DNA of 64,000 nucleotides, from NCBI GenBank assembly GCA_964057225.1, contig CAXKVF010000088.1, positions 124,001-188,000 of the forward strand, written 5' to 3'. A model generated the notes under the pieces. The model was not told where the DNA came from. It did no database searches and saw only the letters and a list, made by a program, of their open reading frames with translations. This document shows, piece after piece, positions 1-61,851 of the stretch. The stretch is from Auanema rhodensis. Lineage: Eukaryota; Animalia; Nematoda. Position numbers and translations under genes: made by a program. How positions within the stretch are numbered: position 1 is the first letter of the stretch; every line of letters starts with the position of its first letter.

Positions 1-3000
1 TGGGGAATCTAATTTTGAAAACCGCATCTCTTTATCTTTCACGTGAAGCGAGTTACATACCAAGAGCACATTACGTGTACATTTAATTAGCATAAATTAA
101 AGTTCACGTAAAATTCAAAGTCATGGTTACCATGCACCAATATCAATAAAAATTTGTTTTTAGACTAATATGGACATGGGGAATCTAATTTTGAAAACCG
201 CATCTCTTTATCTTTCACGTGAAGCGAGTTACATACCAAGTGCACATCACGTGTACATTTAATTAGCATAAATTAAAGTTCACGTAAATTTCAAAGTCAT
301 GGTTACCATGCACCAATATCAATAAAAATTTGTTTTTAGACTAATATGGACATGGGGAATCTAATTTTGAAAACCGCATCTCTTTATCTTTCACGTGAAG
401 CGAGTTACATACCAAGTGCACATCACGTGTACATTTAATTAGCATAAATTAAAGTTCACGTAAATTTCAAAGTCATGGTTACCATGAACCAATATCAATA
501 CAAATTTGTTTTTAGACTAATATGGACATGGGGAATCTAATTTTGAAAACCGCATCTCTTTATCTTTCACGTGAAGCGAGTTACATACCAAGTGCACATC
601 ACGTGTACATTTAATTAGCATAAATTAAAGTTCACGTAAATTTCAAAGTCATGGTTACCATGAAGCAATATCAATAAAAATTTGTTTTTAGACTAATATG
701 GACATGGGGAATCTAATTTTGAAAACCGCATCTCTTTATCTTTCACGTGAAGCGAGTTACATACCAAGTGCACATCACGTGTACATTTAATTAGCATAAA
801 TTAAAGTTCACGTAAATTTCAAAGTCATGGTTACCATGAACCAATATCAATAAAAATTTGTTTTTAGACTAATATGGACATGGGGAATCTAATTTTGAAA
901 ACCGCATCTCTTTATCTTTCACGTGAAGCGAGTTACATACCAAGTGCACATCACGTGTACATTTAATTAGCATAAATTAAAGTTCACGTAAAATTCAAAG
1001 TCATGGTTACCATGAACCAATATCAATAAAAATTTGTTTTTAGACTAATATGGACATGGGGAATCTAATTTTGAAAACCGCATCTCTTTATCTTTCACGT
1101 GAAGCGAGTTACATACCAAGTGCACATCACGTGTACATTTAATTAGCATAAATTAAAGTTCACGTAAATTTCAAAGTCATGGTTACCATGCACCAATATC
1201 AATAAAAATTTGTTTTTAGACTAATATGGACATGGGGAATCTAATTTTGAAAACCGCATCTCTTTATCTTTCACGTGAAGCGAGTTACATACCAAGTGCA
1301 CATCACGTGTACATTTAATTAGCATAAATTAAAGTTCACGTAAAATTCAAAGTCATGGTTACCATGCACCAATATCAATAAAAATTTGTTTTTAGACTAA
1401 TATGGACATGGGGAATCTAATTTGGAAAACCGCATCTCTTTATCTTTCACGTGAAGCGAGTTACATACCAAGTGCACATCACGTGTACATTTAATCAGCA
1501 TAAATTAAAGTTCACGTAAATTTCAAAGTCATGGTTACCATGCACCAATATCAATAAAAATTTGTTTTTAGACTAATATGGACATGGGGAATCTAATTTT
1601 GAAAACCGCATCTCTTTATCTTTCACGTGAAGGGAGTTACATACCAAGTGCACATCACGTGTACATTTAATTAGCATAAATTAAAGTTCACGTAAATTTC
1701 AAAGTCATGGTTACCATGAAGCAATATCAATAAAAATTTGTTTTTAGACTAATATGGACATGGGGAATCTAATTTTGAAAACCGCATCTCTTTATCTTTC
1801 ACGTGAAGGGAGTTACATACCAAGTGCACATCACGTGTACATTTAATTAGCATAAATTAAAGTTCACGTAAATTTCAAAGTCATGGTTACCATGAACCAA
1901 TATCAATAAAAATTTGTTTTTAGACTAATATGGACATGGGGAATCTAATTTTGAAAACCGCATCTCTTTATCTTTCACGTGAAGCGAGTTACATACCAAG
2001 TGCACATCACGTGTACATTTAATTAGCATAAATTAAAGTTCACGTAAATTTCAAAGTCATGGTTACCATGCACCAATATCAATAAAAATTTGTTTTTAGA
2101 CTAATATGGACATGGGGAATCTAATTTTGAAAACCGCATCTCTTTATCTTTCACGTGAAGCGAGTTACATACCAAGTGCACATCACGTGTACAATTAATT
2201 AGCATAAATTAAAGTTCACGTAAATTTCAAAGTCATGGTTACCATGAACCAATATCAATAAAAATTTGTTTTTAGACTAATATGGACATGGGGAATCTAA
2301 TTTTGAAAACCGCATCTCTTTATCTTTCACGTGAAGCGAGTTACATACCAAGTGCACATTACGTGTACATTTAATTAGCATAAATTAAAGTTCACGTAAA
2401 TTTCAAAGTCATGGTTACCATGAACCAATATCAATACAAATTTGTTTTTAGACTAATATGGACATGGGGAATCTAATTTTGAAAACCGCATCTCTTTATC
2501 TTTCACGTGAAGCGAGTTACATACCAAGTGCACATTACGTGTACATTTAATTAGCATAAATTAAAGTTCACGTAAAATTCAAAGTCATGGTTACCATGCA
2601 CCAATATCAATAAAAATTTGTTTTTAGACTAATATGGACATGGGGAATCTAATTTTGAAAACCGCATCTCTTTATCTTTCACGTGAAGCGAGTTACATAC
2701 CAAGTGCACATCACGTGTACATTTAATTAGCATAAATTAAAGTTCACGTAAATTTCAAAGTCATGGTTACCATGCACCAATATCAATAAAAATTTGTTTT
2801 TAGACTAATATGGACATGGGGAATCTAATTTTGAAAACCGCATCTCTTTATCTTTCACGTGAAGGGAGTTACATACCAAGTGCACATCACGTGTACATTT
2901 AATTAGCATAAATTAAAGTTCACGTAAATTTCAAAGTCATGGTTACCATGAAGCAATATCAATAAAAATTTGTTTTTAGACTAATATGGACATGGGGAAT

Positions 3001-6000
3001 CTAATTTTGAAAACCGCATCTCTTTATCTTTCACGTGAAGGGAGTTACATACCAAGTGCACATCACGTGTACATTTAATTAGCATAAATTAAAGTTCACG
3101 TAAATTTCAAAGTCATGGTTACCATGAACCAATATCAATAAAAATTTGTTTTTAGACTAATATGGACATGGGGAATCTAATTTTGAAAACCGCATCTCTT
3201 TATCTTTCACGTGAAGCGAGTTACATACCAAGTGCACATCACGTGTACATTTAATTAGCATAAATTAAAGTTCACGTAAATTTCAAAGTCATGGTTACCA
3301 TGCACCAATATCAATAAAAATTTGTTTTTAGACTAATATGGACATGGGGAATCTAATTTTGAAAACCGCATCTCTTTATCTTTCACGTGAAGCGAGTTAC
3401 ATACCAAGTGCACATTACGTGTACATTTAATTAGCATAAATTAAAGTTCACGTAAAATTCAAAGTCATGGTTACCATGCACCAATATCAATAAAAATTTG
3501 TTTTTAGACTAATATGGACATGGGGAATCTAATTTTGAAAACCGCATCTCTTTATCTTTCACGTGAAGCGAGTTACATACCAAGTGCACATCACGTGTAC
3601 ATTTAATTAGCATAAATTAAAGTTCACGTAAATTTCAAAGTCATGGTTACCATGAACCAATATCAATAAAAATTTGTTTTTAGACTAATATGGACATGGG
3701 GAATCTAATTTTGAAAACCGCATCTCTTTATCTTTCACGTGAAGCGAGTTACATACCAAGTGCACATCACGTGTACATTTAATTAGCATAAATTAAAGTT
3801 CACGTAAATTTCAAAGTCATGGTTACCATGAACCAATATCAATACAAATTTGTTTTTAGACTAATATGGACATGGGGAATCTAATTTTGAAAACCGCATC
3901 TCTTTATCTTTCACGTGAAGCGAGTTACATACCAAGAGCACATTACGTGTACATTTAATTAGCATAAATTAAAGTTCACGTAAAATTCAAAGTCATGGTT
4001 ACCATGCACCAATATCAATAAAAATTTGTTTTTAGACTAATATGGACATGGGGAATCTAATTTTGAAAACCGCATCTCTTTATCTTTCACGTGAAGCGAG
4101 TTACATACCAAGTGCACATCACGTGTACATTTAATTAGCATAAATTAAAGTTCACGTAAATTTCAAAGTCATGGTTACCATGCACCAATATCAATAAAAA
4201 TTTGTTTTTAGACTAATATGGACATGGGGAATCTAATTTTGAAAACCGCATCTCTTTATCTTTCACGTGAAGCGAGTTACATACCAAGTGCACATCACGT
4301 GTACATTTAATTAGCATAAATTAAAGTTCACGTAAATTTCAAAGTCATGGTTACCATGAACCAATATCAATACAAATTTGTTTTTAGACTAATATGGACA
4401 TGGGGAATCTAATTTTGAAAACCGCATCTCTTTATCTTTCACGTGAAGCGAGTTACATACCAAGTGCACATCACGTGTACATTTAATTAGCATAAATTAA
4501 AGTTCACGTAAATTTCAAAGTCATGGTTACCATGAAGCAATATCAATAAAAATTTGTTTTTAGACTAATATGGACATGGGGAATCTAATTTTGAAAACCG
4601 CATCTCTTTATCTTTCACGTGAAGCGAGTTACATACCAAGTGCACATCACGTGTACATTTAATTAGCATAAATTAAAGTTCACGTAAATTTCAAAGTCAT
4701 GGTTACCATGAACCAATATCAATAAAAATTTGTTTTTAGACTAATATGGACATGGGGAATCTAATTTTGAAAACCGCATCTCTTTATCTTTCACGTGAAG
4801 CGAGTTACATACCAAGTGCACATCACGTGTACATTTAATTAGCATAAATTAAAGTTCACGTAAAATTCAAAGTCATGGTTACCATGCACCAATATCAATA
4901 AAAATTTGTTTTTAGACTAATATGGACATGGGGAATCTAATTTTGAAAACCGCATCTCTTTATCTTTTACGTGAAGCGAGTTACATACCAAGTGCACATC
5001 ACGTGTACATTTAATTAGCATAAATTAAAGTTCACGTAAATTTCAAAGTCATGGTTACCATGAACCAATATCAATAAAAATTTGTTTTTAGACTAATATG
5101 GACATGGGGAATCTAATTTTGAAAACCGCATCTCTTTATCTTTCACGTGAAGCGAGTTACATACCAAGTGCACATCACGTGTACATTTAATCAGCATAAA
5201 TTAAAGTTCACGTAAATTTCAAAGTCATGGTTACCATGCACCAATATCAATAAAAATTTGTTTTTAGACTAATATGGACATGGGGAATCTAATTTTGAAA
5301 ACCGCATCTCTTTATCTTTCACGTGAAGCGAGTTACATACCAAGTGCACATCACGTGTACATTTAATCAGCATAAATTAAAGTTCACGTAAATTTCAAAG
5401 TCATGGTTACCATGCACCAATATCAATAAAAATTTGTTTTTAGACTAATATGGACATGGGGAATCTAATTTTGAAAACCGCATCTCTTTATCTTTCACGT
5501 GAAGCGAGTTACATACCAAGTGCACATCACGTGTACATTTAATTAGCATAAATTAAAGTTCACGTAAATTTCAAAGTCATGGTTACCATGAACCAATATC
5601 AATAAAAATTTGTTTTTAGACTAATATGGACATGGGGAATCTAATTTTGAAAACCGCATCTCTTCATCTTTCACGTGAAGCGAGTTACATACCAAGTGCA
5701 CATCACGTGTACATTTAATTAGCATAAATTAAAGTTCACGTAAATTTCAAAGTCATGGTTACCATGCACCAATATCAATAAAAATTTGTTTTTAGACTAA
5801 TATGGACATGGGGGATCTAATTTTGAAAACCGCATCTCTTTATCTTTCACGTGAAGCGAGTTACATACCAAGTGCACATCACGTGTACATTTAATTAGCA
5901 TAAATTAAAGTTCACGTAAATTTCAAAGTCATGGTTACCATGAACCAATATCAATAAAAATTTGTTTTTAGACTAATATGGACATGGGGAATCTAATTTT

Positions 6001-39000: not shown

Positions 39001-39341
39001 AATTTCAAAGTCATGGTTACCATGAACCAATATCAATGAAAATTTGTTTTTAGACTAATATGGACATGGGGAATCTAATTTTGAAAACCGCATCTCTTTA
39101 TCTTTCACGTGAAGCGAGTTACATACCAAGTGCACATCACGTGTACATTTAATTAGCATAAATTAAAGTTCACGTAAATTTCAAAGTCATGGTTACCATG
39201 AAGCAATATCAATAAAAATTTGTTTTTAGACTAATATGGACATGTGGAATCTAATTTTGAAAACCGCATCTCTTTATCTTTCACGTGAAGCGAGTTACAT
39301 ACCAAGTGCACATCACGTGTACATTTAATTAGCATAAATTA
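1..39341. repeat. 176-bp tandem satellite array (left block, ~223 monomers; continues beyond window start)
   Basis: Monomer TGGGGAATCTAATTTTGAAAACCGC...GACTAATATGGACA restarts at 1, 177, 881, 1761 and 2641 (period 176). Copies differ by only a few substitutions. The array stops at ...AGCATAAATTA (39341). Confidence 0.99.
39336..39341 (+). repeat. Probable target-site duplication AAATTA (left copy; right copy 44540-44545)
   Basis: Satellite ends ...GCATAAATTA on the left and resumes AAATTAAAGTTCACG on the right, in register, so 6 bp are duplicated. The TSD is short and AT-rich, so its exact length is uncertain. Confidence 0.65.
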
Positions 39342-39348
39342 GTCAAGG

Positions 39349-39354
39349 TTTATT
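39349..39354 (-). terminator. Polyadenylation-like signal AATAAA at the element 1 3' end
   Basis: TTTATT on + strand, 7 nt from the element/satellite junction. It is followed by CCTTGAC and no poly(A) tail. Confidence 0.6.
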
Positions 39355-39882
39355 GTTCTTTATCACAGGTTATAACAATAGCAGTTTTGAAAAAAGAAAG
39401 TGGATAAAAGAAGTTCCTTACAATATGAACATGATTATATAAATTGATTGACATGAAAACATTAATTGTATAGAGATAAGAATAATTATTGAATCAATTA
39501 TGTCAGTAGAAAATATATATTCTAAACAAGTAAATCTATGTGTCATAGTTGTCAACCCATCCTTGATAAACAAGGGATTTGTTCAGTTCAAAAAATATGA
39601 CCTGACCTCATTTTTACTTTTACCAGGTGCGGTGGAACTTAGAGAAAAAGTCGAGCCCGTTCTGGTAATCAGAGGTAACTATCACCAGATTCGTATGGCT
39701 AATGCCTATAGAGTCCATGGTGCAGTAACATTGTAGCAAAGGGAACAAGGATGTGGTTGAAAACAAAAAATGATACATGAAGAACATAGTTTGCATAGAT
39801 ATTTGTAGAAGACATATTGAAATAATAATTAGAGAACAAAATATCATAAGCAGACGAAAAACATTAATAATGAAAGTGCAAG

Positions 39883-42747
39883 CTAATCGCTAAGGAAAAG
39901 TTGAAGATGTTTGCGAAATTTGGGAGCTTTTTCAAGACTCACAATGTTTGATGGTATTGAATTCCAGAGTTCTATGGCTCTGTACTCGATACCTCTTCTA
40001 GTTTGAGTCTTCTGGACGTTTGGAAAATCCACAGTCCATTCGTGACGCCTTAGTGAGTGTGTGAATTTTTTGAGCTTAAAAATTTTCAAAGTATTCTCTG
40101 AAATTGGTTGTTTTATTTGGTTAAAATAAAAAATTAAATCGAAAACTAGTCTTCTGAAAAATAACTTTTGCCCCCCTAGCAAAGACAGTTGATCTTCATA
40201 GCTCATTTTAGATCCTGAGCGCATGAAAACTGCGCGCAGAAACTTTTTTTGAACATTTTCAATCCGGTCTTTGTCTTTAGAATCTTGTGGGGACCAGATA
40301 ATAGAAGCATATTCCAATATTGGTCTTATGTAAGTACAGAATAAGTTGTACATAAGAGAAGGCGATTTAGAGTAGAAACAACGTAAAATTATTTTACATT
40401 TTTTTGCTGCTTCACTTGTGATTTTGTTTATGTGGTTTGAGAAGGAGAGATTGTAATCTGTGAATACTCCAAGATCTTTGTAACAATCTACTGAAGATAG
40501 GTTAAAGTTACCAAAAGTGAAAGCGAAGTTTTCAGGATTACTAATTGGTTTATTTGACATAACCATTATTTTAGATTTAGAGATGTTAACGGCCATCCCG
40601 TTTGAGTCGCACCATAATTTTAATTGATCAAGGGCCCGCTGTAAACTAGTAGGGTTTTTGCTGTAGAGCTTCAAATCATCTGCATAGAGAATGGAGCTGA
40701 CATCATTAGGAAAATCGGATGTTATGTCATTTATGTAAAATAAAAACAACAGAGGACCAAGAACTGTACCTTGTGGTACACCACAAGTGAGTTGTTTAGG
40801 TGGTGATAAGGAATTATTGACCATAACTGAAAAAAACCTACCAGAGATGAAACTTTGGAGAAAGGAATGAAGTGGGCCTTGAATACCAATGGACTTGAGT
40901 TTTGAAAAAAGAGTAGAATGTTGTATAAGATCGAAGGCTTTTGAAAAGTCGATATAAGCTACAAAAACCGGAGTATTACAGTCCAATGATGATCTGAAAG
41001 AGATGTGGCTACTGAGAATTGCAGAAACAGTGCTTCTTTTAGGAAGGAAGGCGTGTTGATTTTGAGATATGGCACCATTGGAAATACCAAAATTAAGAAG
41101 TGGAGTACGTATTATACGTTCAAAGATTTTTGAGAGACTGGAAGTGAGTGAAATTGGGCGGTAGTTACTTGGATTTTCAGGTCGGCCCGTTTTGAAAATG
41201 GGACGAATCCAGGCTAACTTCCAATCAGGAGGACAAGTTGAGGTAACTAACAAATTGTGAAAAATAAAAGCTAATGGATTAGCCAGAGTAAAAGCACATT
41301 GTTTAAGAAAGTAATATGGAATACCATCCGGAGATGTGGATACCCTGAGTGGAAGACTATGAAGAGTTTTGTAGACCAATTCAGGTGTTATATCCATGAA
41401 ATCAATGGTATGACTGGAAGAAGAAGAGACGGAAACATGAGTGTTTTCCTGAGAGACAAGAGGAGAAAGAGGAGAAACCGTGAAAACCTCGGCAAATGCT
41501 GACACTTTATCAATATCTGAAGAAACTGACACATTGTTGACAGTGAGGTTTGGAATGTCAGATGTTTTACCATTTAATCGGGCCTTACAAAAACGATAAA
41601 AAAGTTTGGAGTTTTTTAAGGCAGCAATACGCTCTTCCTCTAAAGCACAATTGATTTTTATTAGCTTGTCCAATTTTACTGAAAGATTTTTACGGCGAAT
41701 CTCGTCAGATAGATATAAAGAGCAACTTAGCCTGTTAATTTGATTTCTGAGTTTTGCAATGTTACGATCCGCTTTTTTATTTTTCCTCGGTTGTTTTTTA
41801 GGAACATAAATGTCAATGATTGAATGTAGAATAGAGATAAACTTTGAATACGATTGGAGTGGAGTAAGACCTGAAAGTTCAGAACAGAAGTCGATGTTGA
41901 CCAGTTGCCTATTGATACGTTCATAATCAGCCAAAAGGAAATTGCGGTCTGATAACATGGAGAGAGATGTGGGTTCAGCACTATGTAAATCTTGTAGATG
42001 AAAATTTTCAGATTTTGAAAGTATATGAAAGGTGATGGAAAAATGATCCGAAGCCCCAAGTGGACCAGATCGCTTGATATTGTTGACACAACGAACGTTA
42101 TTTGTAATTATATAGTCAAGAATATTTTCACCTCTAGTAGGAAAATTTACTAGCTGGTTTAGACAATTGTGATTGAGAAATTGGAGTAGAATTCTACTAG
42201 AAGGAGTAGGTTGAGAACATATACCAAGATCCCAGTTTATTTTAGGGAAATTAAGATCACCAGTGAGATAGAGAGACCGATTAACTAAATGATTTTGTAG
42301 ATCACAAAGATAGTTTGAGAAATCTAAGCTAGATGATGATGGAGAACGGTAACAAACAGAAAAAATAGAATTGGAAGATGTGATGAGAATATTTATAAAC
42401 TGTATGGTAGATGAATTACAAGAGCAGGAAAGAAGACGAAAAGTAATATGTTTTTTGATGAAAAGTAGTACACCACCACCCCGTGATGAACATCTATCAG
42501 CCCTGAGGATATTATAGATGTCACCTAACGGAAGAAGATTAGTGTTAAATTGGGGGTAAAGCCAGGACTCTGATATAGCAATTATATCAGGAGAATTGGG
42601 AGAGATGATAACTGGGAGAAGATGAAGTTTGTTGAGAATTGAGCGTGCATTGTAACGGTGAACAGAAGTGTAAGTGTGGTTAGAGACGAGAACAGGTGTT
42701 GACGATAACATTGGATCAACGAAAGGACCCGTTATTGGACAAAACAA
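39883..42747 (-). CDS. ORF2: apurinic-like endonuclease + reverse transcriptase (intact, ~950 aa)
   Basis: APE motifs YNARS, DIIAISESW, RGGGVLLFI, CYRSP, GDLN, LDY, SDH. RT motifs SPDGIP, NYRPISLTS, DFSKAFD, GVPQGTVLGPLLF, YADD (~40675-40686), KDLGV, RPILEYASIIWSP. The track start is a TTG and the first ATG is at 42711. The true start may be via frameshift from ORF1. Confidence 0.97.
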   Translation of the reverse strand: MFCPITGPFVDPMLSSTPVLVSNHTYTSVHRYNARSILNKLHLLPVIISPNSPDIIAISESWLYPQFNTNLLPLGDIYNILRADRCSSRGGGVLLFIKKHITFRLLSCSCNSSTIQFINILITSSNSIFSVCYRSPSSSSLDFSNYLCDLQNHLVNRSLYLTGDLNFPKINWDLGICSQPTPSSRILLQFLNHNCLNQLVNFPTRGENILDYIITNNVRCVNNIKRSGPLGASDHFSITFHILSKSENFHLQDLHSAEPTSLSMLSDRNFLLADYERINRQLVNIDFCSELSGLTPLQSYSKFISILHSIIDIYVPKKQPRKNKKADRNIAKLRNQINRLSCSLYLSDEIRRKNLSVKLDKLIKINCALEEERIAALKNSKLFYRFCKARLNGKTSDIPNLTVNNVSVSSDIDKVSAFAEVFTVSPLSPLVSQENTHVSVSSSSSHTIDFMDITPELVYKTLHSLPLRVSTSPDGIPYYFLKQCAFTLANPLAFIFHNLLVTSTCPPDWKLAWIRPIFKTGRPENPSNYRPISLTSSLSKIFERIIRTPLLNFGISNGAISQNQHAFLPKRSTVSAILSSHISFRSSLDCNTPVFVAYIDFSKAFDLIQHSTLFSKLKSIGIQGPLHSFLQSFISGRFFSVMVNNSLSPPKQLTCGVPQGTVLGPLLFLFYINDITSDFPNDVSSILYADDLKLYSKNPTSLQRALDQLKLWCDSNGMAVNISKSKIMVMSNKPISNPENFAFTFGNFNLSSVDCYKDLGVFTDYNLSFSNHINKITSEAAKKCKIILRCFYSKSPSLMYNLFCTYIRPILEYASIIWSPQDSKDKDRIENVQKKFLRAVFMRSGSKMSYEDQLSLLGGQKLFFRRLVFDLIFYFNQIKQPISENTLKIFKLKKFTHSLRRHEWTVDFPNVQKTQTRRGIEYRAIELWNSIPSNIVSLEKAPKFRKHLQLFLSD
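42716..42727 (-). promoter_or_regulatory. Candidate +1 ribosomal frameshift site TCC TTT CGT TGA at the ORF1/ORF2 junction (element 1)
   Basis: Last three ORF1 codons plus stop. ORF2 is open in the +1 frame (CCT TTC GTT GAT CCA ATG). The same motif occurs in element 2. Confidence 0.7.
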
Positions 42748-43785
42748 CAGAAGATGATGCAGAAGGACTACTCATAGATCTGGTATTAGGTCCAGTTGGT
42801 TTAACTACCCGAGGCGGATTTTTTCTCCTTCTTGGGCTTATTGAATGATTTTTATCTGTTGGTACAGACACCTGCCTATTGTTAGACCGACTGGGTCTAC
42901 CAGATTTACGAGGGGGGCTGGAGATGAGAGAAGAAATTGGTTTTAAGATTGAACTGCAAACGGCATCAACTACTGAAGGGGTTTCAGCTGGTTGAGTGTC
43001 CACAGTGACAGAGAGAGTGTTGATGGCATGCGAAGTAACATTGGTAGATTTACGGGGGACTTCAATAATTTTGAGATCCCGTACAAGAAAAGTCTTTTCA
43101 GTGTTATTTTCATTCTTGATTTTTGCTTCTTTTCGCAAGTTTTTCTCCAGTTCAATTTCGAAGGGGAGATAATCTCGTCGCAAAAACGTTTTTGAGAGGA
43201 AATCGAAGCATTTTGATTTATTGAATTTAATAACTTGAATAATCTTGTCACGTAAATCTACCGATGGACACGTAATTATGAGAGGGCCAGGGGAATTAGA
43301 TTTGAGAGTTGAACGTGCAATAGTAATTTGATTGCTATCGATCAAAGAAGACAAAGTGGTGTCCTGAGATTTCTCGATAATAAGATAATAAGTTTTAGTA
43401 ACAACAGAGGTTCAGTTGGAAATTCTGTTGACTTTAATGGCACTCGAAACCAAAGGGCTCTTTTGGCACGGTAGAGGTACTTTGTCTCCTCTGATCGTAA
43501 TTTTTGAAAATGACATGCTACATTGAGTGGGGAAAAAGTTGGAACACAGGTAGAATTAGTGTTGCTAGTGGTTTGAAATGAGTTAAAAGTTTGCTCTAAC
43601 TTATCTAAGCGGGATTTGAAATCCGTTTCGATAGTTTTTAAGCGAGCCTCGTGCGACGTGATACTAATTTTCATACAGTTAAGCTCATTTTTTATATCAT
43701 TTGACAATTTTGAAAAAGAGTTCTCGAGAGACTTTGAGAAATTTTGAAGAGCATTTGTAAGAAAATCATTAGTCACGAAAGACAT
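42716..43785 (-). CDS. ORF1 of element 1 (~356 aa), split by one frameshift near 43411-43345
   Basis: ATG at 43785 (MSFVTNDF...) is followed by a coiled-coil-like segment. The second frame continues ...IIEKSQDTTLSSLIDSN...FLRRDYLPFEIELEKNLRKEA...FLVRDLKII, then a basic Ser/Pro-rich tail ending GSFR-stop. The C-terminal part is homologous to 61390-61851. Confidence 0.8.
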
Positions 43786-44000
43786 ATTGAAAAACGAGGG
43801 AGTAAAAGAAGGGAAGTAAGAAAGAATAAGAATAAACACTGAAGTGGAAAATAAAAAAGAAACAAATACGAGAGAAAGGAAATAATGATAAAACTAAAAT
43901 GCGATACGAAAGAGAGCGCACCTTGACAAAGCCAGTCCGACGAAAATTTCCTTGACAGAAACGGATCCGGATCCAAACAGCGGAAGTCAACTGACGAGTG
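43786..44000 (-). promoter_or_regulatory. 5' UTR with putative internal promoter (Inr-like TCAGTT at 43994-43989)
   Basis: Unique sequence begins CACTCGTCAGTTGACTTCCGCTG on the minus strand. TCAGT-type initiators are common at invertebrate LINE 5' ends. A 12-bp palindrome GGATCCGGATCC lies at 43963-43974, and a pyrimidine-rich tract precedes the ORF1 ATG. Confidence 0.45.
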
Positions 44001-44510
44001 GGAGGTCAACTGACGAGTGAGGAGGTCAACTGACGAGTGGGAGGTCAACTGACGAGTGTGGAGGTCAACTGACGAGTGGGAGGTCAACTGACGAGTGGGG
44101 AGGTCAACTGACGAGTGGGAGGTCAACTGACGAGTGAGGAGGTCAACTGACGAGTGGGAGGTCAACTGACGAGTGAGGAGGTCAACTGACGAGTGAGAGG
44201 TCAACTGACGAGTGGGGAGGTCAACTGACGAGTGGGGAGGTCAACTGACGAGTGGGGAGGTCAACTGACGAGTGGGGAGGTCAACTGACGAGTGGGAGGT
44301 CAACTGACGAGTGGGAGGTCAACTGACGAGTGAGGAGGTCAACTGACGAGTGGGAGGTCAACTGACGAGTGGGAGGTCAACTGACGAGTGAGGACGTCAA
44401 CTGACGAGTGAGGAGGTCAACTGACGAGTGAGGAGGTCAACTGACGAGTGAGGAGGTCAACTGACGAGTGAGGAGGTCAACTGACGAGTGAGGAGGTCAA
44501 CTGACGAGTG
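43982..44510. repeat. 19/20-bp minisatellite (27 copies) at the 5' end of element 1
   Basis: Invariant 15-nt core GTCAACTGACGAGTG counted 27 times, separated by 4-5-nt linkers GGAG/AGGAG/GGGAG/TGGAG/AGAG/AGGAC. Confidence 0.98.
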
Positions 44511-44539
44511 TTCACGTAAATTTCAAAATTTTAAATTTC
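44510..44539 (+). other. Junction filler templated from adjacent satellite
   Basis: GTTCACGTAAATTTCAAA (44510-44527) copies 44548-44565. TAAATTTCAAA (44532-44542) is a second partial copy. Confidence 0.85.
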
Positions 44540-47500
44540 AAATTAAAGTTCACGTAAATTTCAAAGTCATGGTTACCATGAAGCAATATCAATAAAAATT
44601 TGTTTTTAGACTAATATGGACATGGGGAATCTAATTTTGAAAACCGCATCTCTTTATCTTTTACGTGAAGCGAGTTACATACCAAGTGCACATCACGTGT
44701 ACATTTAATTAGCATAAATTAAAGTTCACGTAAATTTCAAAGTCATGGTTACCATGAACCAATATCAATAAAAATTTGTTTTTAGACTAATATGGACATG
44801 GGGAATCTAATTTTGAAAACCGCATCTCTTTATCTTTCACGTGAAGCGAGTTACATACCAAGTGCACATCACGTGTACATTTAATTAGCATAAATTAAAG
44901 TTCACGTAAATTTCAAAGTCATGGTTACCATGAAGCAATATCAATAAAAATTTGTTTTTAGACTAATATGGACATGTGGAATCTAATTTTGAAAACCGCA
45001 TCTCTTTATCTTTCACGTGAAGCGAGTTACATACCAAGTGCACATCACGTGTACATTTAATTAGCATAAATTAAAGTTCACGTAAAATTCAAAGTCATGG
45101 TTACCATGAACCAATATCAATAAAAATTTGTTTTTAGACTAATATGGACATGGGGAATCTAATTTTGAAAACCGCATCTCTTTATCTTTCACGTGAAGCG
45201 AGTTACATACCAAGTGCACATCACGTGTACATTTAATTAGCATAAATTAAAGTTCACGTAAATTTCAAAGTCATGGTTACCATGAACCAATATCAACAAA
45301 AATTTGTTTTTAGACTAATATGGACATGGGGAATCTAATTTTGGAAACCGCATCTCTTTATCTTTCACGTGAAGCGAGTTACATACCAAGTGCACATCAC
45401 GTGTACATTTAATTAGCATAAATTAAAGTTCACGTAAATTTCAAAGTCATGGTTACCATGCACCAATATCAATAAAAATTTGTTTTTAGACTAATATGGA
45501 CATGGGGAATCTAATTTTGAAAACCGCATCTCTTTATCTTTTACGTGAAGCGAGTTACATACCAAGTGCACATCACGTGTACATTTAATTAGCATAAATT
45601 AAAGTTCACGTAAATTTCAAAGTCATGGTTACCATGAAGCAATATCAATAAAAATTTGTTTTTAGACTAATATGGACATGGGGAATCTAATTTTGAAAAC
45701 CGCATCTCTTTATCTTTCACGTGAAGCGAGTTACATACCAAGTGCACATCACGTGTACATTTAATTAGCATAAATTAAAGTTCACGTAAATTTCAAAGTC
45801 ATGGTTACCATGAACCAATATCAATAAAAATTTGTTTTTAGACTAATATGGACATGGGGAATCTAATTTTGAAAACCGCATCTCTTTATCTTTCACGTGA
45901 AGCGAGTTACATACCAAGTGCACATCACGTGTACATTTAATTAGCATAAATTAAAGTTCACGTAAATTTCAAAGTCATGGTTACCATGCACCAATATCAA
46001 TAAAAATTTGTTTTTAGACTAATATGGACATGGGGAATCTAATTTTGAAAACCGCATCTCTTTATCTTTCACGTGAAGCGAGTTACATACCAAGTGCACA
46101 TCACGTGTACATTTAATTAGCATAAATTAAAGTTCACGTAAATTTCAAAGTCATGGTTACCATGCACCAATATCAATAAAAATTTGTTTTTAGACTAATA
46201 TGGACATGGGGAATCTAATTTTGAAAACCGCATCTCTTTATCTTTCACGTGAAGCGAGTTACATACCAAGTGCACATCACGTGTACATTTAATTAGCATA
46301 AATTAAAGTTCACGTAAATTTCAAAGTCATGGTTACCATGAACCAATATCAATAAAAATTTGTTTTTAGACTAATATGGACATGGGGAATCTAATTTTGA
46401 AAACCGCATCTCTTTATCTTTCACGTGAAGCGAGTTACATACCAAGTGCACATCACGTGTACATTTAATTAGCATAAATTAAAGTTCACGTAAATTTCAA
46501 AGTCATGGTTACCATGCACCAATATCAATAAAAATTTGTTTTTAGACTAATATGGACATGGGGAATCTAATTTTGAAAACCGCATCTCTTTATCTTTCAC
46601 GTGAAGCGAGTTACATACCAAGTGCACATCACGTGTACATTTAATTAGCATAAATTAAAGTTCACGTAAATTTCAAAGTCATGGTTACCATGAAGCAATA
46701 TCAATAAAAATTTGTTTTTAGACTAATATGGACATGGGGAATCTAATTTTGAAAACCGCATCTCTTTATCTTTCACGTGAAGCGAGTTACATACCAAGTG
46801 CACATCACGTGTACATTTAATTAGCATAAATTAAAGTTCACGTAAATTTCAAAGTCATGGTTACCATGCACCAATATCAATAAAAATTTGTTTTTAGACT
46901 AATATGGACATGGGGAATCTAATTTTGAAAACCGCATCTCTTTATCTTTCACGTGAAGCGAGTTACATACCAAGTGCACATCACGTGTACATTTAATTAG
47001 CATAAATTAAAGTTCACGTAAATTTCAAAGTCATGGTTACCATGCACCAATATCAATAAAAATTTGTTTTTAGACTAATATGGACATGGGGAATCTAATT
47101 TTGAAAACCGCATCTCTTTATCTTTCACGTGAAGCGAGTTACATACCAAGTGCACATCACGTGTACATTTAATTAGCATAAATTAAAGTTCACGTAAATT
47201 TCAAAGTCATGGTTACCATGAAGCAATATCAATAAAAATTTGTTTTTAGACTAATATGGACATGTGGAATCTAATTTTGAAAACCGCATCTCTTTATCTT
47301 TCACGTGAAGCGAGTTACATACCAAGTGCACATCACGTGTACATTTAATTAGCATAAATTAAAGTTCACGTAAAATTCAAAGTCATGGTTACCATGAACC
47401 AATATCAATAAAAATTTGTTTTTAGACTAATATGGACATGGGGAATCTAATTTTGAAAACCGCATCTCTTTATCTTTCACGTGAAGCGAGTTACATACCA

Positions 47501-61236: not shown

Positions 61237-61406
61237 AATTATCTTCCTTTTGAAATTATCTTCCTTTTGAATTGATCTTCCTTTTGAAATTATCTTCCTT
61301 TTGAATTGATCTTCCTTTTGAAATTATCTTCCTTTTGAAATTATCTTCCTTTTGAAATTATCTTCCTTTTGAAATTATCTTCCTTTTGAAATTATCTTCC
61401 TTTTGA
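61237..61406. repeat. 17-bp tandem array (10 copies) at the 5' truncation point of element 2
   Basis: Unit AATTATCTTCCTTTTGA x8 plus variant ATTGATCTTCCTTTTGA x2 (61271, 61305). The last copy runs straight into ORF1 sequence (YLPFEIQLENNLREEAK). Confidence 0.97.
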
Positions 61407-61851
61407 AATTCAACTGGAAAACAACCTTCGCGAGGAAGCAAAAGAAAAAAACAAAAACAACACTAAGTCTGTCTTTTTGGTACGAGATCTTCGACTTATT
61501 GAAGTTTCCCGCAATCCAGCCGATCCTCCAAACCCTCAAATAGCTCCCACTTCTTCTTGTAATCAAACTCCTAAAATACCATCTATTCACAACGTTCCAT
61601 TACCAACACTCCATTCTCAAACTCTCACATCCCCAACTCTTTTTTCTAGCCCCCCTTGTAAATCTGGTAGAATGAGCCGGTCGAAGGAAAGACAGAACCG
61701 CACGTCAAAAGACAAGCGTTCTTCTGTTAGCCCAAGACGTCGCAAAAATCCACCACGATCCGCAAAATTAACCACAGATCAAATTACCAGATCTGTTAGC
61801 ATGAACAATACATCTCAACGTCTCACGTCTGACAAAATGTCCTTTCGTTAA
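61390..61851 (+). pseudogene. C-terminal remnant of ORF1 (5'-truncated)
   Basis: NYLPFEIQLENNLREEAKEKNKNNTKSVFLVRDLRLIEV...SSPPCKSGRMSRS...SPRRRKNPPR...MSFR-stop aligns with element 1 DYLPFEIELEKNLRKEAKIKNENNTEKTFLVRDLKIIEV...SPRRRKNPPR...GSFR-stop. Confidence 0.92.
61840..61851 (+). promoter_or_regulatory. Candidate +1 ribosomal frameshift site TCC TTT CGT TAA (element 2)
   Basis: Last three ORF1 codons plus stop. The ORF2 frame (+1) is open from 61805 and has no ATG until 62612. Confidence 0.72.

Follow-up and report, generated by a model that had tools for sequence, protein, structure and literature searches.

The L1 elements of mouse and rat are headed by tandem 5' promoter monomers of ~200 bp, which are inherited, whereas CR1, L2 and I-type LINEs carry short 3' tail repeats that are generated by slippage at initiation, and TART regenerates its 5' end by a template jump. 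End-to-end template jumping and untemplated addition by the reverse transcriptases (RTs) of R2 and L1 have reportedly been described by Bibillo and Eickbush. The RT lineage of telomerase is related to non-LTR elements, and telomerase is thought to descend from retroelement RTs.

Natural 5' junctions of R1 and R2 contain untemplated bases, microhomology and target duplications, and no tandem arrays of the terminal 17-20 nt of the element have been seen there (PMC2718515). In bacteria, the defence RT DRT2 produces concatemeric cDNA from one RNA segment, the concatenation rebuilding a promoter, and its authors considered it the second case, after telomerase, of an RT that is used for repetitive DNA synthesis (PMC12039810). 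The literature searched contained no account of short arrays regrown at LINE 5' junctions, and no natural retrotransposon that makes tandem repeats by re-copying the end of its template was found on record.

Here we analyze a 64-kb stretch of the genome of the nematode Auanema rhodensis, referred to as the window, in which a LINE begins with 27 tandem copies of its own 5'-terminal nucleotides. On balance, we consider it probable that this array is the 5' end of a satellite-site LINE whose RT would re-copy the end of its RNA at insertion, with at least two units inherited and with turnover of the array thereafter. The locus resembles the jumping of the R2 and L1 RTs in that the event would take place at 5' run-off of the RNA, with extra bases at the seams of some arrays, target duplication at the junction and microhomology at truncated junctions; unlike in R1 and R2, the jump would here return repeatedly to a fixed distance from the same end. 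As in CR1, L2, I-type LINEs and TART, slippage or jumping of the RT at the template terminus would create or restore the terminal repeats of a LINE, but in these systems the event takes place at the 3' end, or a long terminal repeat is copied a single time, whereas many short units are found here at the 5' junction. Our proposal also has in common with DRT2 that tandem repeats are made by an RT from one linear RNA segment, which is copied again and again; DRT2, in contrast, is bacterial, employs a 120-nt template that is bounded by RNA structure, has a primer-binding site and involves no transposition event (PMC12039810).

Results

Element 1 and its insertion site

A 176-bp satellite fills nearly the whole window (positions 1-61232, 92% matches) and is interrupted by two stretches of differing composition. 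The first of these, located at 39342-44510 on the minus strand, was identified from its open reading frames (ORFs), Pfam domains and junctions as a LINE encoding an endonuclease and an RT. This element, termed element 1, is without poly(A), and its 3' terminus reads ...CCTTGAC (boundary ± 2 nt). Its ORF2 (39883-42747, minus strand; 954 amino acids) showed Pfam matches to Exo_endo_phos (residues 47-238) and Exo_endo_phos_2 as well as to RVT_1 (residues 526-731; E = 5e-34), and the closest solved structures were those of human L1 ORF2p and the R2 RT (E ~1e-13). With a predicted endonuclease and a predicted RT in one ORF, element 1 has the attributes of an APE-type non-LTR retrotransposon, and its family displays the hallmarks of LINEs, namely, a constant 3' end, variable 5' truncation and target-site duplication. 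No RNase H domain was detected in ORF2, the last 220 amino acids of which were without a Pfam match even at E <= 10.

The ORF1 region (42716-43839, minus strand) is formed by two overlapping frames (43839-43342 and 43354-42716), with a first ATG near 43785, and ORF2 overlaps the second of these frames. The unique part of the 5' UTR lies between ORF1 and the array (43840-43981, minus strand). Since the ORFs for the endonuclease and the RT are on the minus strand, from 43839 down to 39883, the plus strand corresponds to the cDNA sense, in agreement with a preliminary description of this DNA. A search for known ribozymes over 39200-44700 gave no Rfam match at E <= 1, which speaks against a 5'-end ribozyme as in R2 or RTE.

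Copies of the element 1 family were gathered by searching the window's own genome (the A. rhodensis assembly), and all of them terminate with ...CCTTGAC at the 3' end. Those located in the satellite sit after ...GTGAACTTTAATT, and TAATT is duplicated. In the window, the 3' copy of this target-site duplication (39337-39341, minus strand; sense TAATT) directly follows the 3' end of element 1, and the satellite resumes with the 5' copy (44541-44545, minus strand; sense TAATT). A target-site duplication of 33 bp, as opposed to TAATT, was observed in one copy (L047). Judged from the copies recovered, the element 1 family is specific for one satellite position, with few copies elsewhere, and this holds in both the 98-100% and the ~80% subfamilies. 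Three remoter families (66-75% identity), one of which includes element 2, the other insertion in the window, are found mostly at a second satellite position, ...CACATCACGTG, in the opposite orientation.

Over 10 kb, the satellite monomers of the window (1-61232) and of L079/L080 (contig C101) showed ~99% identity whatever the register, so that the orthology of flanks was judged from mismatch positions only, overall identity being uninformative. Between the array and the satellite lies a filler of 30 nt (44511-44540, minus strand), composed of a second copy of ~17 nt of the upstream target (sense TTTGAAATTTACGTGAA) and an imperfect 12-nt piece. This filler points to further short-patch copying, over approximately the same length, on target DNA at the 5' junction.

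The 27-unit array

The 5'-terminal array of element 1 occupies 43982-44510 (minus strand) and comprises 27 units of 19-20 nt, each consisting of the sense core CACTCGTCAGTTGAC, the linker CTCC and 0-1 extra nt. Tandem Repeats Finder returned a period of 20, 27.0 copies and 96% matches for this segment. In an exact-string count, the 15-nt core (GTCAACTGACGAGTG on the plus strand) occurred 27 times with zero mismatch. The linkers, 4-5 nt in length, read GGAG, AGGAG, GGGAG, TGGAG, AGAG and AGGAC on the plus strand (sense CTCC, CTCCT, CTCCC, CTCCA, CTCT and GTCCT), and the innermost unit is followed by GGAA on the plus strand (sense TTCC). The preliminary description had reported 27 copies, a mismatch-free core, variation confined to these linkers, GGAA innermost versus GGAG in the repeats and a TCAGTT in every unit; the sequence and the string count agree with it on each of these points, TCAGTT being present in each sense unit. 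It had also reported an unrelated array on element 2, and this was found at 61237-61410 (plus strand), where Tandem Repeats Finder counted 10.2 units and the comparison with relatives showed the 17-nt unit to be the beginning of a truncated body.

The linker accounts for 23% of the window array and contains all five variant types (P <= 6e-4, assuming five independent and evenly spread variant types). The even spread of point changes over the unit that is expected of an ordinary minisatellite was thus not seen in this array, and there was no significant clustering of its linker types (p = 0.14). The restriction of variation to the seams, as originally claimed, is therefore upheld for the window and does not extend to the family, in which other copies vary inside the core. 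The extra seam bases (sense T, C or A) are appended to an intact GGAG, no part of which is replaced. A cap-derived extra base was also considered and is ruled out, as the extra bases are T, C or A in the sense strand and not G.

Arrays at full-length 5' ends and in related families

The unit was present at every independent full-length 5' end of the element 1 family (about nine independent ends), in numbers that varied from 1.3 to 32. Low unit counts were observed in L010-12 (1.3 units), L006 (1.4 units), L014 (2.3 units), L007/L030 (2.7 units), L013/15 (~6 units) and L008/9 (8.7 units), and high counts in L047 (11 units), L029 (19 units), the window copy (27 units), L048 (~27 units) and L001 (32 units). 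The outermost unit is cut at a differing offset in each independent full-length array. The outermost, partial unit and the end of the target often have 1-3 nt in common (for instance, TT in L048 and L006, AT in L034), which suggests that re-copying would stop once the upstream target captures the cDNA end.

Four related families (80%, 70-75%, 69% and 66% identity) carry 5' arrays of their own terminal 17-20 nt, spanning 1 to 76 units, with the maximum in L020. The suggestion that such arrays are a family-level property, initially based on the two insertions in the window, has thereby been substantiated. Within one family, two unit boundaries were noted, since L017 has a 20-nt unit that reaches the unique sequence and L018 a 17-nt unit; the register is thus set anew in each array.

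Errors in the long-read assembly of repetitive DNA could account for the arrays or for their copy numbers, and both the 99% homogeneity of the surrounding satellite and the recurrence of small variants that are possible read errors (CA insertion, C-run length) would be compatible with this. The same architecture, however, was encountered at > 20 loci spread over many contigs; the period is exact, and the unit in every case corresponds to the body next to it. We consequently regard an assembly artefact as extremely improbable.

Rearrangements were noted in two of the copies. In L029 (G000:C4:13074900-13084000), the array is followed by positions 1-1474 and then by 253-4639, and this internal 1.2-kb tandem duplication would fit a template switch in the course of reverse transcription. 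Toward the outer tip, the array of L029 alters in steps: the 4 canonical units give way to 2 units of a first variant, after which come 1 unit with an extra CA and 11 units of an 18-nt variant. In L030 (G000:C3:10137500-10147499, locus positions ~629-5098), a body truncated at 1294 is placed head-to-head with an inverted 5' segment (1-1071), the 2.7-unit array of which abuts the truncation point. This copy looks like an L1-style twin-priming inversion, and its junction would show the appearance of the RNA 5' end without a target junction.

Arrays at truncated 5' ends

The unique bodies of the element 1 family start at positions 1, 253, 349, 1294, 1686, 2326, 3224, 3574, 3604, 4005, 4234, 4252 and 4335. 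The copy L034 (contig C3), which is located at the same satellite site, has a body of 1416 nt with 100% identity (rounded) to the window copy and starts at unique-body position 3224, inside the RT domain (residues GPLLFLFYIND). It carries nine exact units of its own first 19 nt, i.e., eight extra units, spaced by exactly 19 nt, and only the innermost seam deviates, by one base. In L042 (C6, truncated at 4234), an A-rich filler is followed by ~1.8 copies of its own first 20 nt. The 17-nt unit of element 2, in turn, is a single-copy sequence located ~800 nt inside the 86%-related full-length copies L020, L021 and L028. Coding sequence from the points of truncation makes up the arrays of L034, L042 and element 2, which therefore cannot be inherited promoter repeats.

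Any repeat was present in only 3 of the ~12 independent truncated copies of the element 1 family, the remaining ~9 having no repeat, a short filler or a complex duplication (L044), and this low proportion counts against the proposed re-copying. If reiteration needs a real RNA end, and if most truncations correspond to premature joining, the ~9 truncated copies without an array would fit.

Like mouse and rat L1, the LINEs studied here are headed by a variable number of tandem units, and the unit would be inherited with the element and would probably carry the start signal, which is putative in our case. Unlike L1 monomers, the units of the element 1 families measure 17-20 nt, their boundaries differ between copies of one family, and arrays are also derived from arbitrary coding sequence at truncated 5' ends. 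For repeats of the monomer type, only the canonical 5' unit is expected to be reiterated and none should be found on truncated copies, an expectation with which L034, L042 and element 2 do not agree.

Probably inherited units and changes after insertion

In the copies of the window subfamily, TTCC was found innermost only, and all outer units have CTCC. The innermost linker of the 95-97% subfamily is CTCC, indicating that TTCC is a substitution that became fixed in the innermost unit of the window subfamily and that this unit was not the source of the outer ones. The CTCC of all outer units, as opposed to the TTCC of the innermost, implies indirectly that the RNA template already carries at least two units. 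A recognisable form of the 19-nt unit persists in the 86% and 80% subfamilies. All five families have the motif TGACCT in their terminal unit (window 43982-44510, L013, L017-L021, L023-L028), their leaders being otherwise dissimilar, and TCAGTT is limited to three of the five, namely, the element 1 family, its relative at 80% identity and the family at 70-75%. On the other strand TGACCT reads AGGTCA, the nuclear-receptor half-site sequence, and it may be a candidate promoter or recognition element. The terminal unit would thus be passed on with the 5' end and would probably have a function there.

As the alternative to formation at insertion, the preliminary description had named an inherited 5' UTR repeat. 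This alternative is partly correct, given that conservation of the unit reaches the 86% and 80% subfamilies and that at least two units would be contained in the RNA; it does not extend to the arrays of the truncated copies. In its complete form, the whole array would be an inherited minisatellite similar to mouse L1 monomers that is transcribed and passed on, and differences in copy number and linkers would be due to 5' truncation within the array followed by unequal exchange. Such a scenario agrees with the restriction of TTCC to the innermost unit, CTCC being found in every other unit of all subfamily copies, with the conservation of the unit in the 95%, 86% and 80% subfamilies and of TGACCT in all five families, and with the demonstrable instability of arrays after insertion. 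We nevertheless consider it unlikely, because L034, L042 and element 2 repeat coding sequence from their truncation points, the unit boundaries of L017 and L018 differ, unequal exchange does not create seam-only insertions of differing bases, and the order of units is not common to independent young copies.

The instability of the array became apparent from contig C101, which contains the same insertion as the window copy (contig C95). Both have an identical 30-nt filler, and their 5' and 3' flanks are identical over 1830 nt and 60 nt, respectively; beyond this shared segment, they diverge at the ordinary satellite level, as judged from mismatch positions. Comparison of the two bodies over 3.8 kb revealed 3 mismatches, and the arrays contain 32 units in C101 versus 27 units in C95, with three unit-indels and one core substitution. 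Provided that the assembly is correct here, the window array is thus far more prone to change than the sequence around it.

The alignment of unit order between C95 and C101, used as a positive control, gave a score of 41 versus 19.4 ± 3.3 for shuffles (p < 0.0005). The unit orders of the window array and of that in L048, an independent insertion of the same young subfamily, were no more alike than shuffles (p = 0.72). A common ancestry of the window and L048 arrays, considered on account of a CTCT linker at similar depth, was rejected by the same test (p = 0.72). The preliminary description had held that a linker order common to all full-length copies would speak against formation at insertion, and the comparison of independent full-length copies showed that the order is not shared. 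As positive evidence this carries less weight, since the turnover of arrays after insertion is fast, and the rapid DNA-level turnover seen between C95 and C101 could also scramble the order of units, a point that counts against re-copying at insertion. The original claim that the array is made at insertion is supported by the arrays at the truncation points of L034, L042 and element 2, and has to be modified for an innermost part that would be inherited and for units that are gained and lost later.

Seams, variants and their polarity

Variation at one seam takes the form of 0-2 extra bases in the window and L048 arrays, which is as expected for untemplated addition at run-off. The additions are CT or CA in L048 and are absent or constant in L009, L018, L020, L021, L023 and L034. 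Since the seams do not vary at all in many arrays, random untemplated addition is not a general feature. In 10 of the 11 independent arrays that contain variants, the variant units are located toward the outer tip, the part of the cDNA that is made last (sign test, p = 0.006).

A single persistent variant forms blocks in the arrays of L029, L047, L019 and L025, and multi-unit blocks are repeated within the arrays of element 2 and L019. Re-copying of a constant RNA end is therefore not the whole story; such blocks would need either slippage at the DNA level or a template in which the first unit is already variant. The insertion of CA into GTCAGTTGAC, resulting in GTCACAGTTGAC, recurs in three independent arrays (L029, L048 and L013/L015) and would represent either a slippage hot spot or a read-error pattern.

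One may envisage that a single short duplication at the 5' junction, due to one template switch or to host end joining such as that by polymerase theta, was later expanded by replication slippage or unequal exchange in the satellite heterochromatin. The presence of only ~2 copies in L042 is what one would expect of such a seed, and gain and loss at the DNA level are indicated by the multi-unit blocks of element 2 and L019 and by the 27 versus 32 units of the same insertion. Short repeat seeds are normally stable, however, and L034 has 9 units despite 100% (rounded) identity over its 1416-nt body. In addition, the 20-76 identical units on young copies would demand a very rapid expansion from a 2-unit seed, and the outward polarity of the variants fits directional synthesis. 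Expansion from a seed hence appears rather unlikely to us.

The preliminary description had proposed that the cDNA end GGAG re-pairs with UUCC of the RNA by means of a G-U wobble, which corresponds to base-pair realignment of the telomerase or prime-and-realign type. The difference between the innermost linker TTCC and the CTCC of the repeats prompted this idea, and slippage by one whole unit becomes possible once the RNA holds at least two units. The proposal was not sustained by the family, in which CTCC is innermost in the related 95-97% subfamily. The start of the unit and the bases after the unit have no nucleotide in common in L034 and element 2 and share 2 nt in L042, so that the three de novo arrays offer 0-2 nt of possible pairing. 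Furthermore, the extra seam bases were added to an intact GGAG, with none replaced. Realignment by base pairing is thus very improbable.

As in telomerase, a DNA 3' end would be extended by tandem repeats that stem from the repeated copying of a short RNA segment, and the sequence pattern expected of such an activity was found, in that the arrays are exactly the first 17-20 nt of the body, are located on the side synthesised last and have their variants outward. Realignment by pairing to an alignment region, as in telomerase, was not seen in L034, element 2 (0 nt each) and L042 (2 nt). Unlike in telomerase, there is here no dedicated template and no alignment region; any terminal sequence can be used. 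The units measure 17-20 nt, and what results is an internal junction and not a chromosome end.

Discussion

The sequence comparisons document de novo arrays at truncated ends, a pattern that is family-wide and changes that follow insertion, and they imply a template with at least two units; it is from these observations that we propose a mechanism. During target-primed reverse transcription, the polymerase would reach the physical 5' end of the RNA and would not stop there. The last 17-20 nt would then be re-copied repeatedly, sometimes with 0-2 untemplated bases per restart, until the upstream target captures the cDNA end, usually via a microhomology of 0-3 nt. In full-length copies, the innermost part of the array would be inherited via the RNA and the outer part added at insertion, and the array would keep altering in the DNA afterwards by gain and loss of units. 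We infer that the re-copying would be done by the LINE's own RT, that some of the 27 units would have been made at the window insertion and that the unit may have a promoter role.

The distance of each restart would be a fixed ruler that is set by the enzyme-template complex at the RNA end, and not by base-pair realignment. Such a ruler is suggested by the constant length of 17-20 nt whatever the sequence. An RNase H cut ~18 nt behind the active site would leave a terminal RNA fragment that could act as a repeated acceptor for end-to-end jumps, which would explain this length. As no RNase H domain is detectable in ORF2, an RNase H of ORF2 itself is doubtful as the ruler, and a host RNase H is a possible source.

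The conservation of the terminal-unit motif across families (TGACCT, plus TCAGTT in three families) is the reason to think that the regrowth of this motif probably protects or rebuilds the putative start signal of the element. The genome-wide pattern of terminal re-copying appears to be undescribed.

Dozens of insertion junctions in the A. rhodensis genome record such events, some of them from arbitrary template ends. These junctions offer a direct handle on the behaviour of a LINE RT at the end of its template and on the completion of LINE 5' junctions, and they bear on the possible origin of tandem 5' promoter repeats such as the L1 monomers. They also suggest how a LINE whose start signal is internal may avoid the loss of its 5' end in each cycle. 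We put forward, as a tentative idea that we would not yet favour over its negation, that the RTs of these satellite-specific nematode LINEs may possess an intrinsic capacity for repeat addition at 5' run-off of the RNA, by which the last 17-20 nt would be reiterated at a distance set by the protein and the start signal would be regrown. If true, this intrinsic repeat addition by the RT would amount to a telomerase-like activity inside a retrotransposon, one that regrows the start signal at each insertion.
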